Shown here piece by piece: positions 43,301-50,050 of a stretch of DNA of 64,000 nt. The notes below the pieces were generated by a model. That model was given only the letters and a program-made list of their open reading frames with translations, made no database searches and was not told the origin of the DNA. The stretch comes from Magallana gigas. Lineage: Eukaryota. Both the position numbers and the translations under genes were made by a program. Numbering within the stretch: position 1 is the first letter of the stretch; every line of letters begins with the position of its first letter. The stretch covers positions 41,292,001 through 41,356,000 of the forward strand of contig NC_088858.1 of NCBI RefSeq assembly GCF_963853765.1, given 5' to 3'.

Positions 43301-44692
43301 ACATGTTTTCTCTTACAAGACTATAATTTTTGCTAATTGAGGCTTAAAATAAAAATACATTACTATGATATTTTAATAATTGGATTGTGAATTGAAAATT
43401 TTATATGAAAATAAATACATTCATACTGTTTATGTTAAATGATAGTGCAAACATTTTAAACTGTAAAGAAATCCTTTATAAAAGTGTTAAATTTCTTTAT
43501 TATTCAACTCTAAGGGACTCAAAATCAGTTCGCTATATCTGTAAATTCGTTATATCCAAATTTGTTATAACTGTAAAATTTTGCAAAGATTTGTTCAGAA
43601 CTTTACCAGGGACTCAAAAGAACTTCCCTATAACCAAGAATTCGCTATATCCATGTTCATACTAAACGAGTTTAGTTAAATTCATAGATGAAAAACGAAA
43701 GTTAACGAATCGTTCACTATAGTTTACAGTTTGCAAACTATAGCTGCAGGTCTGTAGCTCCCGGCCTGAAAAAATTCTGATGGACGACCTGGGAGTTACA
43801 GTGCAACCCACTGAAAAAACTGTATATTTATTGCGCGAAAAAACGTGCACATACTATAGTCTGTCCCAAGATATATATGCTGCATAATTGAACGATTTTT
43901 AATAAAAATACACATACCTGTGACAGAAGTGCAATTAAAATCGATGAAAGGGAAAATTACCAAGATAACTTCATTCACACATTATTATTTTTCCCTCGTA
44001 AAAAATCACAGGAACGAAAACAGATTTCCTACGGAGATTTATATTGGGGAATGTTGACATCTTTTCTCCATTCGGAGGTACTCAGGACACCTCGCGCAAT
44101 TTTTCAACATTATCATCCGGGCATCTTCATCTCCTTGGCAATGGAAAAAACCTGTAGACTTTTTATTTTTAGCCGTGTATTGATACCCAACAAGCTAGAG
44201 GGGGCGTTTCAAAGGGGAAATCTTGGGATTTTTTCATACTATTGGATGAACATCGTCTGATACAAGAGGTATTTATAAATATCGAATAATTTAAGGAAAT
44301 ATGCGGCAAAAATATCTTGGGACAGACTATAGAGTAGTTTTGGACCAATTAACCTTATTTATACACAAATTCTGTGAACAATTAGTACCATTAAGTTCTT
44401 TGTGCAGTTTACTACTGATATCGTCTCTTAACTATATATACCATTTTTCAATGGGTTGCACTATACCTCCCAGGTCGTCCATTCGAATGTTTTCAGACCG
44501 GGTAACTACAGACCTGCAGCTACATAAACTATAGTTAACAGTCGATAAACCTAGTTTATCAAACGTGAAACTATGTTTAGCCATCTTTTGTGAATTTGAC
44601 GTGCCATACACTGCATGTATCAATTAATAGCAGGTGCATATTATAATATAAATTTGAAAGTGGGAAATTACACAACCTACAAACAGGGACCA

Positions 44693-44729
<37 letters not shown>

Positions 44730-45155: not shown

Positions 45156-45740
45156 CTGCACCGGATATTATGAATGCCGTGTAAAAAGTAAACCATGAAA
45201 GTTCAATTCCGGTTTGTCCGCCAGATGAGCAATATGCACGATACCACATCCCCTCAATGCGCGTACATATGCAGCAGATGGGGAGTAAAAGTGTATAAAC
45301 ACATACAAGAATGATATCAACATTATATAAGTTAGAAAGTGGTTTGTTCAATCAGGTTGAGTATGCGCCCGAGCCACAGGCAAACGACGTTAAAAAATAC
45401 TATTTTTTCCTATAAATGTTAGATAATTTTCTCTGCTACAAGTTTTTTGGTTTTTTTTTATTTTTGGTATAGGAAATTATCTCACAATAAAAAGTTAAAC
45501 AGGCTCCTTAGATGGAAGCAGAATCGCCTGACATTAAAAATAAAAGCCATTATCAGCTGTACTTTTTAAAAAATATTAACGATAGTTATCATTATAGTGC
45601 AGGGGATCATCAGTAATCTTGTTATTTTAAAATGAAATATTTTTAACGTCAGGCGCCTGTGTGTATCTCAAATCAATAATCTGTAAATTATAAATGCACA
45701 TGAAAAACAAATCTTACAATTTATATTCTGTTGTAAATAT

Positions 45741-45930
45741 ATATATTTAATTCAGGTTGAAAGATATAACAACGTTTTATCGAGCACGTGGTTTGCTATT
45801 TATAGTTTGTTTACTAAGGGTGGTTTACGCGTAGTAATACTGGTTAGACCAGTTATTAGGGCATGACTGGTATGCTTTGTGATTTTAAGTTATTCGAGCT
45901 CAAGACTTAGCGCTGTTTACACGCTTTGCA
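45741..45930 (+). repeat. Split direct repeat A1
   Basis: Matches 49522-49711 with one substitution. Confidence 0.95.
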
Positions 45931-46662
45931 ATGTCGGACTCTGATAGCGGTTTGTTGGGCGGGGACACCGACAAGAGTTCTTCAACTCCAGCCGCCGATA
46001 TAACGGACACTTTCAACCTATTTAAGTGTTACTTGGATTCTTCGCTAAACTCGTTCAAGAAGGAGCTTTTGGACAGCCAAGAAGGTAGAGATATCGATTT
46101 AGAGAAAAAACTTAAAAAAGATATAGCGTCTTCATTAAAGAGTCCGGGCAATAAAATACAGTTTGAATTCAATGAAGAAATCATCGCAGATTTGCAAAAG
46201 TTAAAGAAAAAAGTAAAATCTAAGAGTGAGTGTGAAGCATTCGATAGCATCATAACAAAGTTGTCTAAACGAAATAAACTTATCCGTATAGCAGACAATT
46301 CTCCAGCAGGGTGGGCCACAGTTCATCAATATGAGCACAACGACATTGCCTCTGATTCGGACGATGACAAAAAACTACGACAGGCAGAAAACAGAGCTTT
46401 GCGTGCTATTAAAGAGAAGAAGAGGTTCCAGCCATACAAACCACGCCCTTCCGGCTACAGCGCTCCTCAGCCTGCTACTGGCAGTATTCCTTCCGCTGCT
46501 GCTGGAAGTCAACAGCAGCTTTTTCGTGGCTTCGGGAAACGCCGTGAACCATCTTCCTACGACATCTGTTTCCACTGCAAGTCAGTCGGGCACTGGAGGA
46601 AACACTGTCCCCTGTTCAGCGCCGCCAATCAGTCAAGCGGTTCGGGATCAGTTAGTAATTGA
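45931..46662 (+). CDS. Gag-like protein of the PAT-like element
   Basis: 243-aa ORF starting immediately after repeat A1, with CCHC zinc knuckle CFHCKSVGHWRKHC (CX2CX4HX4C). Confidence 0.85.
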   Translation: MSDSDSGLLGGDTDKSSSTPAADITDTFNLFKCYLDSSLNSFKKELLDSQEGRDIDLEKKLKKDIASSLKSPGNKIQFEFNEEIIADLQKLKKKVKSKSECEAFDSIITKLSKRNKLIRIADNSPAGWATVHQYEHNDIASDSDDDKKLRQAENRALRAIKEKKRFQPYKPRPSGYSAPQPATGSIPSAAAGSQQQLFRGFGKRREPSSYDICFHCKSVGHWRKHCPLFSAANQSSGSGSVSN

Positions 46663-48074
46663 TAATTTTGCCTTTCGGTCTTTCTTCGGCACCTTACATT
46701 TTTACAAAGTGTTTACGACCAATGGTGAGATACTGGAGGCAGTCGGGTGTCAACATTGTGTTGTATTTAGACGATGGCCTGGGATTGGCTGAATCATACG
46801 AGAAAGGGGTATCTGATAGCCTTTTCGTTAAAGATTCCTTAGAAAAGGCTGGGTTTTTGGTAAATTTGGAAAAGTCTATTTTTGAACCTTGTCAAATGTT
46901 AGAATGGCTAGGAATGATATGGAACACTAACATGTTTTGTTTGTCTATTCCAGAGAGACGTATACAAGATTGTAAGAGCACTTTAGCAGATTTGTTTCAT
47001 AGATTACCAAAAATTACTGCAAGACAATTGGCTCAGTTTACGGGCAAGGTTATTTCTATGGGACCAGTGATCGGTAACATTAGTAGACTTATGACAAGAA
47101 AGTGTTATGAAATTATCGAGTCCCGATTTGCATGGGATAGTGTGATTAGATTTGATAGTTCACATGAGTTTTTGCAAGAACTTTCGTTCTGGTCGAAGAA
47201 TTTGGACATGTATAACTGTCGTTTTATGAAAGATTATTCTAAATCAATTGCTATTTTATGCACAGATGCTAGTTCAGTAGCTGCAGGAGCTGTATGTCAA
47301 TTATCAGGTACACACAAGTACTTTCACAGTAATTTTTCAGAAGTAGAGAGTGCACAAAGTTCCACCTGGCGAGAACTTAAGGCAATTCAGCTTGCTTTAT
47401 TTTCGTACAAAGAAAACCTTAGTGGGAAGTCTGTGAAAATATTGACTGACAGTAAAAATTGTGTTTCAATTGTCCAAAGTGGTAGCACGAAAAATGATTT
47501 ACATGTAATTGCTCTTTCTATTTTTCATTTGTGTTTGCAGAGAAAAATTTCGTTAGATATTGCATGGATTCCCAGAGAAATGAATGAAACGGCAGATTAT
47601 TTAAGTAAATTAGTGGATTACGATGATTGGTCTGTATCTGATGAATTTTTTGAATTTATGAATAATATGTGGGGCCCTTATACAGTGGACAGATTTGCAA
47701 ATTATCTTAATAAGAAATTACCTAGATTTAACTCTTTGTTCTGGAATCCTGGTACTGATGCAGTTGATTGTTTTTCTCAAGATTGGAGTTCAGATAATAA
47801 TTGGCTAGTGCCACCTATTCATTTAGTCATGAGAAGTTTAAGGCATCTTATGTATTGCAGATCACGAGGTACTTTGATCGTTCCTTATTGGCCATCGGCG
47901 CCGTTTTGGTCTATGATTTTTGGACCGGATATGACATATAGAAGTTATGTAACAGATGTTATTCAGTTTAATGATGTAAGAGGTATTTTGTGCAGAGGCA
48001 CGTCTAAGAACTGTATATTTGGGACTGAAAAATTTCATGGTTCTTTATTGGCTGTTAAACTTTGTTCTGTATGA
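46659..48074 (+). CDS. N-terminally truncated reverse transcriptase / RNase H / DIRS-type adenine methyltransferase-like ORF
   Basis: Begins abruptly at LPFGLSSAP (stop codon directly upstream, no ATG), then YLDDG; RNase H motifs TDAS, WRELKAI, LTDS, NETADYLS; MT-like VDRFA...PRFNS...DWS...WLVPP. Confidence 0.9.
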   Translation: MIILPFGLSSAPYIFTKCLRPMVRYWRQSGVNIVLYLDDGLGLAESYEKGVSDSLFVKDSLEKAGFLVNLEKSIFEPCQMLEWLGMIWNTNMFCLSIPERRIQDCKSTLADLFHRLPKITARQLAQFTGKVISMGPVIGNISRLMTRKCYEIIESRFAWDSVIRFDSSHEFLQELSFWSKNLDMYNCRFMKDYSKSIAILCTDASSVAAGAVCQLSGTHKYFHSNFSEVESAQSSTWRELKAIQLALFSYKENLSGKSVKILTDSKNCVSIVQSGSTKNDLHVIALSIFHLCLQRKISLDIAWIPREMNETADYLSKLVDYDDWSVSDEFFEFMNNMWGPYTVDRFANYLNKKLPRFNSLFWNPGTDAVDCFSQDWSSDNNWLVPPIHLVMRSLRHLMYCRSRGTLIVPYWPSAPFWSMIFGPDMTYRSYVTDVIQFNDVRGILCRGTSKNCIFGTEKFHGSLLAVKLCSV

Positions 48075-48331
48075 GCAGATTTGAACATGGTCCTAGTACT
48101 GTTGTACTGAGTGACGTGGTTAGATGCTTGAATTGTGCATTTGTATGTATCTGTTGTATATATTTTATGCTATTGCAGAATGACGACTGATGAGATGATA
48201 TTGTGTAAGACACGGTCCTAAGAGCATTAGGCATTAGTGACATGGTCTTGGAATTTGTTTTTGACATGGTCCCTGTTATGGACAGAGCGACATGGTCAAA
48301 TTTGAAATAAAATAATGTGAGGGACTAACAA

Positions 48332-49357
48332 ATGTTTCCGTGTTTACATTTTTCAGATGTTTTCCAAACAGGAAGATGGGCCTCAATTCAGACATCGGGG
48401 GAAAATTTGGCGGACCTGAAGTTCTTCTGTGAAAAATCCAAATCTGAAAGTACTTTTCGTAAATATCGGTATGCCTTTAATTCATGGATAAAGTGGTGTT
48501 ATTCGCAAAGTCCTAAAGTGCAACATTTCCCTGCTTCTGATTTCAACGTTTCCATATATTTGATTAATTTATCAAAACAATTGAACTCTGTTGCAAAAGT
48601 TAATGAAGCCTTTTATGCCATTTCTTGGGCTCATGAAATTTCAGGAACACAAAATCCTTGTCATTCATCATTAGTCGTTTCAGTTTTGGAGGGAGCTCGC
48701 CGCTTAAGTGCTAAACCTGTTACCAAGAAAGAACCAATAACTTCTGAAATTTTACAGCAAATAGTGAATCGTTACGGGACCGGAAGTAGCAGTTTACCAG
48801 ACATTCGAATTTCATGTATGTGTCTATTAAGTTATGCAGCTTTTTTACGTTTTTCAGAACTGGTCAACTTAAAACGCTCTGACATTACATTTTATGAGGA
48901 CCATCTTTCTTTGTATATCTCTAAGAGTAAAACAGATAAATATAAGACTGGGAGTAATGTAATAGTTTCTAAAACAAATAATGTTACTTGTCCGTATGGT
49001 ATGTTACAATTGTATTTAAAAATTGCTGACATTGCTTCGGATTCTGATTGTTTTATTTTCAGGGCGTTATCATTTTGTAAAAAATCTGGTAAATATAAAT
49101 TAAGAAATTCTGGACCATTGTCTTATAGTAGAGCAAGGGCATTATTACTTAATGCTTTGGAAAGTGTTGGTGTGGATAAGTCCAAATTTGGTCTTCACAG
49201 TTTAAGGTCAGGGGGCGCTACTGCGGCTGCTAATGCTGGTGTGAGTGACAGACTGTTTAAGAAGCACGGCAGGTGGCGCTCTGACAACGCAAAAGACGGT
49301 TATGTTCATGAAAATGTAAAATCATTGATGTCTGTGTCTCAGTCATTGAATATTTGA
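48332..49357 (+). CDS. Tyrosine recombinase of the PAT-like element
   Basis: Uninterrupted 341-aa frame with an N-terminal helical core-binding region and catalytic residues R (LRFSE), K (SKTD), HxxR (HSLR), H (KHGRW) and Y (DGYV). Confidence 0.93.
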   Translation: MFPCLHFSDVFQTGRWASIQTSGENLADLKFFCEKSKSESTFRKYRYAFNSWIKWCYSQSPKVQHFPASDFNVSIYLINLSKQLNSVAKVNEAFYAISWAHEISGTQNPCHSSLVVSVLEGARRLSAKPVTKKEPITSEILQQIVNRYGTGSSSLPDIRISCMCLLSYAAFLRFSELVNLKRSDITFYEDHLSLYISKSKTDKYKTGSNVIVSKTNNVTCPYGMLQLYLKIADIASDSDCFIFRALSFCKKSGKYKLRNSGPLSYSRARALLLNALESVGVDKSKFGLHSLRSGGATAAANAGVSDRLFKKHGRWRSDNAKDGYVHENVKSLMSVSQSLNI

Positions 49358-49417
49358 ATGTGTTCAATAATAAATATAACTTACAGTTTTTCTTTTCCCC
49401 TTTCTTTGTTACGTTCG

Positions 49418-49711
49418 AAATGCGCTAGTCTTGGAGCACTTACCCATAATCAGTGTTGTTATGATTGAATAAGGTTGTAAATATTTTATGTTCGTTTGAG
49501 ATAGTTCGAATTAGAACATAAATATATTTAATTCAGGTTGAAAGATATAACAACGTTTTATCGAGCACGTGGTTTGCTATTTATAGTTTGTTTACTAAGG
49601 ATGGTTTACGCGTAGTAATACTGGTTAGACCAGTTATTAGGGCATGACTGGTATGCTTTGTGATTTTAAGTTATTCGAGCTCAAGACTTAGCGCTGTTTA
49701 CACGCTTTGCA
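49418..49711 (+). repeat. Abutting split direct repeats B1 + A2
   Basis: B1 ends GAACATAA at 49521 and A2 starts ATATATTTAATTCAGG at 49522. Confidence 0.95.
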
Positions 49712-49872
49712 CCCACCCGCCCACCCACTTATACATAATCATTCATGTATTGGGTTTGATTGCACAAAATATTAATAAAATGCATAATGCTATAATATTT
49801 CTGTTGCAGATAATGAGTTTTGTCCCAAGAATTCGACATATATTAACGCGGTATCTATGTATTTTATTGAAT

Positions 49873-49976
49873 AAATGCGCCAGTCTTGGAGCACTTACCC
49901 ATAATCAGTGTTGTTATGATTGAATAAGGTTGTAAATATTTTATGTTCGTTTGAGATAGTTCGAATTAGAACATAA
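49873..49976 (+). repeat. Split direct repeat B2
   Basis: Matches 49418-49521 with one substitution. Confidence 0.95.
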
Positions 49977-49992
49977 TTATATAACTGGTCAA

Positions 49993-49996
<4 letters not shown>

Positions 49997-50050
<54 letters not shown>
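49997..50050. repeat. (CT)n microsatellite
   Basis: Direct reading. Confidence 0.95.

Follow-up and report, generated by a model that had tools for sequence, protein, structure and literature searches.

Probable splicing-dependent expression of the tyrosine recombinase in a PAT-like retrotransposon of the Pacific oyster

PAT-like retrotransposons, members of the order DIRS, carry gag, a polymerase gene (pol) with reverse transcriptase (RT), RNase H and methyltransferase-like regions, and a tyrosine recombinase (YR), in this order, and are framed by split direct repeats of the form A1 ... B1-A2 ... B2 (PMC3266345). Expression of the third gene of DIRS-order elements is not addressed in the searchable literature, and within the openly searchable part we found no report of DIRS, PAT or Ngaro elements that splice naturally, only artificial marker introns. 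In plant Ty1/copia and BARE elements, subgenomic spliced RNAs set the balance of products and enrich gag (PMC5580714, PMC3735527), and spliced RNA of human L1 is reverse-transcribed and inserted, giving rise to spliced integrated retrotransposed elements (SpIREs; PMC5860796). Here we analyze a 64,000-nt stretch of the Pacific oyster (Magallana gigas) genome (NC_088858.1, positions 41,292,001 to 41,356,000; hereafter the window), which carries at 45737-49982, on the forward strand like all its parts given below, a 4.2-kb PAT-like element possessing the split repeats and the gene order gag-pol-YR of the group but lacking the first half of RT. We consider it probable that in this oyster family YR has no conserved start codon and is reached via a phase-1 splice acceptor, that the main donor lies at the gag stop, and that the window copy was itself copied from a spliced RNA. 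A conserved splice that removes pol and provides YR with a start codon at the gag stop would be a testable answer to the question of third-gene expression.

A preliminary description of the locus had pointed to a branch point and acceptor in front of the YR open reading frame (ORF) and to a donor-like site in gag, and had proposed that splicing between them fuses about 51 Gag residues to YR and removes all of pol. The observation is confirmed, while the interpretation is partly supported. We found GGGACTAAC at 48321-48329 and TGTTTACATTTTTCAG ending at 48356; the exon start at 48357 is in phase 1 of the YR frame, the ATG at 48357-48359 is out of frame, and AAG/GTAGAG at 46084/46085 (slashes mark splice boundaries) is in phase 1 in gag. 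The whole 3' splice-site region, with a branch-like CTAAC, a pyrimidine tract and an AG at 48355-48356, spans 48321-48356. An in-frame ATG at 48332, eight codons 5' of the AG and within the proposed intron, had been missed; the YR frame opens only at 48329, the upstream stop being the TAA within CTAAC, and unspliced translation from this ATG (48332-49357) would give 341 amino acids (aa). The bare acceptor motif is within the chance level, as CTAAC-N10-35-YYYYYCAG matches once in the window versus 1.49 expected from shuffles, and AAGGTAGAG once versus 0.27 expected; the support comes from the comparison with other copies and relatives.

Splicing into YR at exactly this acceptor is borne out both by annotated isoforms that we could rebuild from the window and by deep conservation. 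Three M. gigas RefSeq proteins, P0139, P0138 and P0150 (XP_065944279-85), carry variants private to the window. When we translated the combination 46722-47073, 47266-47307 and 48357-49357, together with two shorter combinations, all three were recovered with 100% identity over their full length, the first exon starting at 46722 or 47058 and ending at 47073. Every junction of the three rebuilt isoforms is GT-AG, and the acceptor reads TACATTTTTCAG/. The donors used lie in pol and are both in phase 1, namely D1 at 47073/47074 (TCG/GTAACA; P0138, P0139 and P0150) and D2 at 47307/47308 (CAG/GTACAC; P0139 and P0150), and between them an internal acceptor, GCACAG/AT at 47265/47266, opens the 42-nt mini-exon 47266-47307 (P0139 and P0150). 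A site equivalent to D2 is used at other loci by P0003, P0004 and P0151. Moreover, our protein search with YR retrieved RefSeq and Ensembl entries belonging to four or more oyster loci, and every one of them enters YR at .../[DN]-VFQTGRW.

Among close relatives, ranked by YR identity (87% for locus L003, 81% for L004-L006), ACATTTTTCAG/AT and AAATGATAAGTATG are invariant while the flanking bases vary. The CTAAC, previously regarded as a textbook branch point, is not kept as a conserved signal: it is replaced by CTAGC, TTAAT or TTTAT, and only the loose yUnAy pattern persists. Of the signals named in the preliminary description, the acceptor AG is conserved in the 81-87% relatives and the branch point is not. 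Farther away, 55 homologues of 45-60% identity, when read through the site, show [HR]F-S-D-[IV]F..GRW following T-rich 'junk', with S, A or T before the junction and D, A, E, G or V at the junction itself. A metagenome scan added 80 loci to this distant set, and 28 distinct alignable loci were counted in a hidden Markov model alignment. An AG occupies the exact phase-1 position in 16 of these 28 loci versus a background of 6.6% (P = 2e-12, a value that, like the one given below for the donors, overstates independence because the compared loci are interrelated). In these 16 loci the codon before the junction is TCA (eight), ACA (four) or GTA, TTA, CCA or GCA, always of the form NNA, and the codon after it begins with G in every case; the remaining 12 loci have a pyrimidine tract and a YAG a few bases off. 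This codon pattern fits a constraint on nucleotides, not one on protein.

The splice that removes all of pol can be seen in full-length copies, although not with the donor suggested earlier. We compared a copy from Crassostrea angulata (L001) and a full-length M. gigas copy (L002). In both, the end of gag reads AAA-TGA-TAA/GTATGA, in which an ATG overlapping the gag TGA is followed by ATA-A and then by GT. The RefSeq protein P0136 (MINVFQTGRW...) corresponds to ATGATAA of L001, a 2293-nt intron (GTATGACG...CATTTTTCAG) and the YR exon. P0136 hence represents the pol-skipping mRNA that had been sought; the exon before the intron supplies its start codon, and its donor is found at the gag stop, not at codon 51 of gag. 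Counted from the ATG that comes first behind the gag stop, a phase-1 GTR is met within five codons in 11/17 lineages versus 13% of other ATGs (P = 1e-6), and three further lineages show the ATG-GTR pattern at a later nearby ATG. The wobble bases required for both ATG and GT are fixed within a peptide of the pol frame, NDKY or KDEY. Two candidates were set aside in this part of the analysis. The Pecten maximus RefSeq model P0092 was not used as support, as its intron ends are non-canonical under the mapping used, and an AT-AC intron was rejected for the oyster family, which has no ATATCC-type donor and whose in-frame join is GT-AG (GTATGA...TTTTCAG). We note that P0092 (L008:8350-8370 and 10905-10917) enters YR at the conserved codon, and that a canonical phase-1 solution, ATG...TTAA/GTACCA ... 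TTACAG/AT, lies 4 nt away.

In the window itself the exon encoding 'MI' of the spliced isoform was not found; it equals the gag-stop ATG, which here is TTG and fused to RT. The remnant of this mini-exon, ATGATAA in full-length copies, reads TTGATAA at 46659-46665, its first codon overlapping the gag stop TGA, and is joined at 46665/46666 directly to the middle of RT. Relative to L001 and L002, exactly 602 nt are lost at this point, and the missing piece begins with GTATGA, i.e., the gag-stop donor, and ends with TTTACAG. The same 602 nt are an intron in the RefSeq protein P0004, which corresponds to L002 ATGATAA, the 602-nt intron, the C-terminal half of RT up to D2, and YR, while the DNA of L002 keeps the piece; its intron status at L002 is that given by RefSeq annotation, not by reads seen. 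The longer form, with the 602 nt, is carried by one RNA-library contig and eight RNA reads. The idea that the piece is non-coding, given its TTTACAG end, was rejected, since it encodes the first half of RT. The window copy is otherwise complete, with intact A and B repeats and an alignment to L001 and L002 from end to end. Because an exact GT..AG piece that is annotated as an intron elsewhere is absent here, the window copy appears to be a DNA copy of a spliced RNA, and its 'RT deletion' would be a footprint of splicing. Joining of the gag-stop donor to the RT-internal acceptor in the template RNA would explain both the exact loss of 602 nt and the loss of that donor. With the donor gone and the initiator changed to TTG, YR of the window copy would be joinable only via D1 or D2, as in RefSeq, or conceivably via the gag donor. 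Thus, the expectation that an RT-deleted copy could still make recombinase holds insofar as pol exons are annotated as joined to YR, but the donors are D1 and D2, not 46084. Like SpIREs (PMC5860796), the oyster copies lack an exact GT..AG piece; unlike SpIREs, they belong to another class of element in another host, and three different pieces are gone in three copies.

The other two pieces begin at the gag donor of the preliminary description. A GT..AG segment of 210 nt, in frame, extends from 46085 to 46294 and ends in a tandem acceptor, TATAG/CAG/, which makes either 46291 or 46294 possible as its last base. Exactly 46085-46294 (210 nt) is absent from L001 and exactly 46085-46291 (207 nt) from L002, both losses starting with GTAGAG. 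The segment is judged ancestral because the 81% relatives have homologous sequence, which encodes conserved gag residues; neither the gag-internal nor the RT-internal acceptor is conserved, there being no AG in the 81-87% relatives. Judging from these losses, 46084/46085 is a working donor, the partner documented for it being the gag-internal acceptor (46291 or 46294). The donor proposed at this position is consequently upheld by the L001 and L002 copies, while its proposed partner, 48357, is not.

Built on the observed sites with their phases and conservation, on their exact match to annotated isoforms and on DNA copies devoid of the introns, our model of the oyster family is as follows. Full-length copies would use ATG-ATA-A/GTATG as their main donor, at the gag stop, with the ATG overlapping the TGA of gag; all of pol, about 2.3 kb, would leave the RNA as an intron, and YR would read M-I-N-VFQTGRW... 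right behind gag. The weak donor may keep most of the RNA unspliced for gag, pol and replication, and in a minority of spliced RNA the YR ORF would be translated from the AUG overlapping the gag stop, via reinitiation or leaky scanning. The gag intron starting at 46084/46085, the RT-internal acceptor, and D1 and D2 in pol would be weaker, younger splice sites. The abundance of the spliced RNA, the mode of translation and the activity of the fusion products are those parts of the model that we infer. A similar solution is used by avian leukosis and Rous sarcoma viruses, whose env mRNA is formed by a splice that places a few codons of gag in front of env. There, too, splicing takes out pol, and the downstream gene owes its start codon to the exon before it; in the oyster elements, however, this ATG overlaps the gag stop instead of being the gag ATG, and gag remains intact upstream, resulting in a two-cistron mRNA. 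The oyster splice differs as well from that of Ty1/copia and BARE elements, in that it exposes a third gene, the recombinase.

Several points weigh against this model, in addition to the interrelatedness of the compared loci mentioned above. The RefSeq models enter the comparison as annotation. In three distant lineages (L046, L079 and L027) the donor is in phase 1 and the best acceptor in phase 0, and in the oyster subfamily the in-frame ATG at 48332 could serve an unspliced RNA. A 2.7-kb RNA-library contig runs colinear and unspliced through 46968-49661. Finally, at a coverage of 1-8x, about 4x, RNA reads (about 1% of each of two polyA runs, with at least three reads needed to list a joint) showed neither a joint nor a loose end at 48357. 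These reads show that unspliced RNA dominates, and their depth is too thin against rare spliced forms; the absence of junction reads is hence weak negative evidence. Logan fragments in the YR clusters likewise included none crossing a junction. In the three lineages with the phase-0 acceptor, which come from metagenome contigs, the donor is a conserved AAAGATGA/GTAT (ATGA/GTAT) in phase 1; read in phase 0, this clade has a TGA whose end coincides with the donor, and the exon that follows starts with ATG in L046.

The alternative that survives best, although we hold it to be unlikely, is the direct splice from 46084/46085 to 48357 as a significant route to the recombinase. Its product would be a fusion of Gag residues 1-51 to YR; we found this join to be open, with a length of 384 aa (local translation), and the gag donor and the YR acceptor each work and are both in phase 1. 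Fusions of comparable form are annotated: in Mytilus edulis, whose element has the gag-stop ATG-GT motif, a RefSeq model joins gag codons 1-16 (AGAG/GTGAGT) to the homologous acceptor, and the Ensembl protein P0155, from a deletion copy, links gag to YR in frame through two additional small exons. GTAGAG, however, is a weak donor with a documented partner inside gag, and none of the isoforms recovered, which represent four or more oyster loci, uses the direct join. Residues 1-51 of gag, taken as a region query in place of a look-up of the joined protein, returned eight proteins with the forms SQE/DNSPAG and SQE/ADNSPAG, and no protein of 134-425 aa with gag 1-51 has the junction SQE/DVFQ. The RNA reads, at their depth of only about 4x from about 1% of the runs, contain no joint from 46084 to 48357. 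The join of about 51 gag residues to YR was thus found neither in databases nor in the thin RNA reads. As regards P0155 and its counterpart P0156 (M. gigas and C. angulata loci), gag ...DDDKKL is joined straight to pol PVIGN...; in our reading the boundary lacks a GT, and this derivative is probably a genomic deletion copy yielding gag-pol and gag-YR fusion models.

Slightly less credible is the possibility that translation of YR starts at the ATG of its unspliced ORF (48332), either on unspliced RNA or on a transcript initiated in the spacer between pol and YR, with use of the acceptor being incidental. The 341-aa ORF opened by this ATG, the presence of the unspliced YR ORF in many RNA-library contigs (P0001 and P0121), a rise in read depth near 48100, albeit from tiny counts, and conserved spacer repeats that could be promoter elements all speak for it. 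Against this, the ATG is not conserved, being GTG in the 87% relative and absent from the 81% relatives, while the AG 24 nt 3' of it is invariant; an in-frame ATG 5' of the site is lacking in the majority of the distant relatives checked. A search for exact matches to the unspliced YR of 341 aa gave none. The spacer repeats consist of three copies of GACATGGTC at 48239-48300, with GACACGGTC just 5' of them; they are invariant in the 81-87% relatives, whereas their surroundings vary, and might act as an internal promoter, as splicing enhancers or as binding sites for proteins. Just 5' of the ATG at 48332, the triplets ATG-TGA at 48315-48320 form a minimal upstream ORF, which spacer-initiated transcripts would meet first. 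The protein P0132, from a Logan contig, represents a variant copy whose YR begins with the out-of-frame ATG corresponding to 48357; some 15 codons further on, an indel of 1 nt restores the frame.

That gene predictors merely stitched ORFs across a repeat, with the conserved F-S-D being a protein motif and not a splice site, we regard as very improbable: the models enter as annotation, later annotation runs can reuse earlier proteins as evidence, and one Pecten model has non-canonical boundaries under the mapping used, but the position before the junction is occupied by S, T, A, P, L or V, with A as the third base of the codon in every case (8/8 Ser codons are TCA), and genomic copies without exact GT..AG pieces show that RNA of the element is spliced.

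Whether removal of pol as an intron is a general and ancient recombinase route of PAT-like retrotransposons in marine invertebrates is, in our judgment, evenly balanced. In such a route, an exon end at the gag stop (an ATG, zero to five codons, one base and then GT) would supply the start codon, and a phase-1 acceptor would lie just 5' of the YR motif [IV]F..G.W. The recombinase level would be set by the efficiency of splicing and tied to the end of gag translation, and side products of splicing would time and again return to the genome as DNA copies, giving defective elements. If true, this would explain the frequent lack of an ATG in PAT-like recombinase ORFs, the 'xerD homolog' genes with many isoforms in oyster annotations, and the scattered genomic copies without exact gag or RT pieces. 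For annotation, it would mean that stop-to-stop calls of recombinase ORFs carry a false N-terminus, i.e., a translated pyrimidine tract.

The remaining features of the element are as follows. The terminal repeat A1 (45737-45930) is 99% identical to its direct partner A2 (49518-49711), both of 194 nt, and B1 (49418-49527) is 98% identical to B2 (49873-49982), both of 110 nt; B2 forms the 3' end of the element, where the alignments to L001 and L002 stop. The gag ORF (45931-46662) encodes 243 aa with a CCHC zinc knuckle. It is followed by the truncated pol ORF (46659-48074), which comprises the C-terminal half of RT with its YLDD motif, RNase H and a weak Dam-like region; RT_RNaseH, RVT_3 and RVT_1 score above their Pfam cutoffs, RVT_1 covering only profile positions 119-203, while the Dam methyltransferase match after RNase H is weak (20.2 bits versus a cutoff of 28.1). 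A complete RT is present in L002. The YR exon (48357-49357) encodes a tyrosine recombinase with a Phage_integrase domain above the cutoff (E = 1.7e-11), and our protein search listed 1514 YR homologues.

About 330 nt 5' of the gag stop are already open in the pol frame, which there overlaps gag in +1 (L002:6001-6332, corresponding to window 46331-46662), and the conserved peptide NDKY or KDEY precedes the first ATG of pol. This overlap and the position of the peptide suggest that pol may be produced by frameshifting, not from its own ATG. Two (CT)n microsatellites accompany the element, one about 1 kb 5' of it (44687-44727) and the other directly 3' of it (49990-50050).

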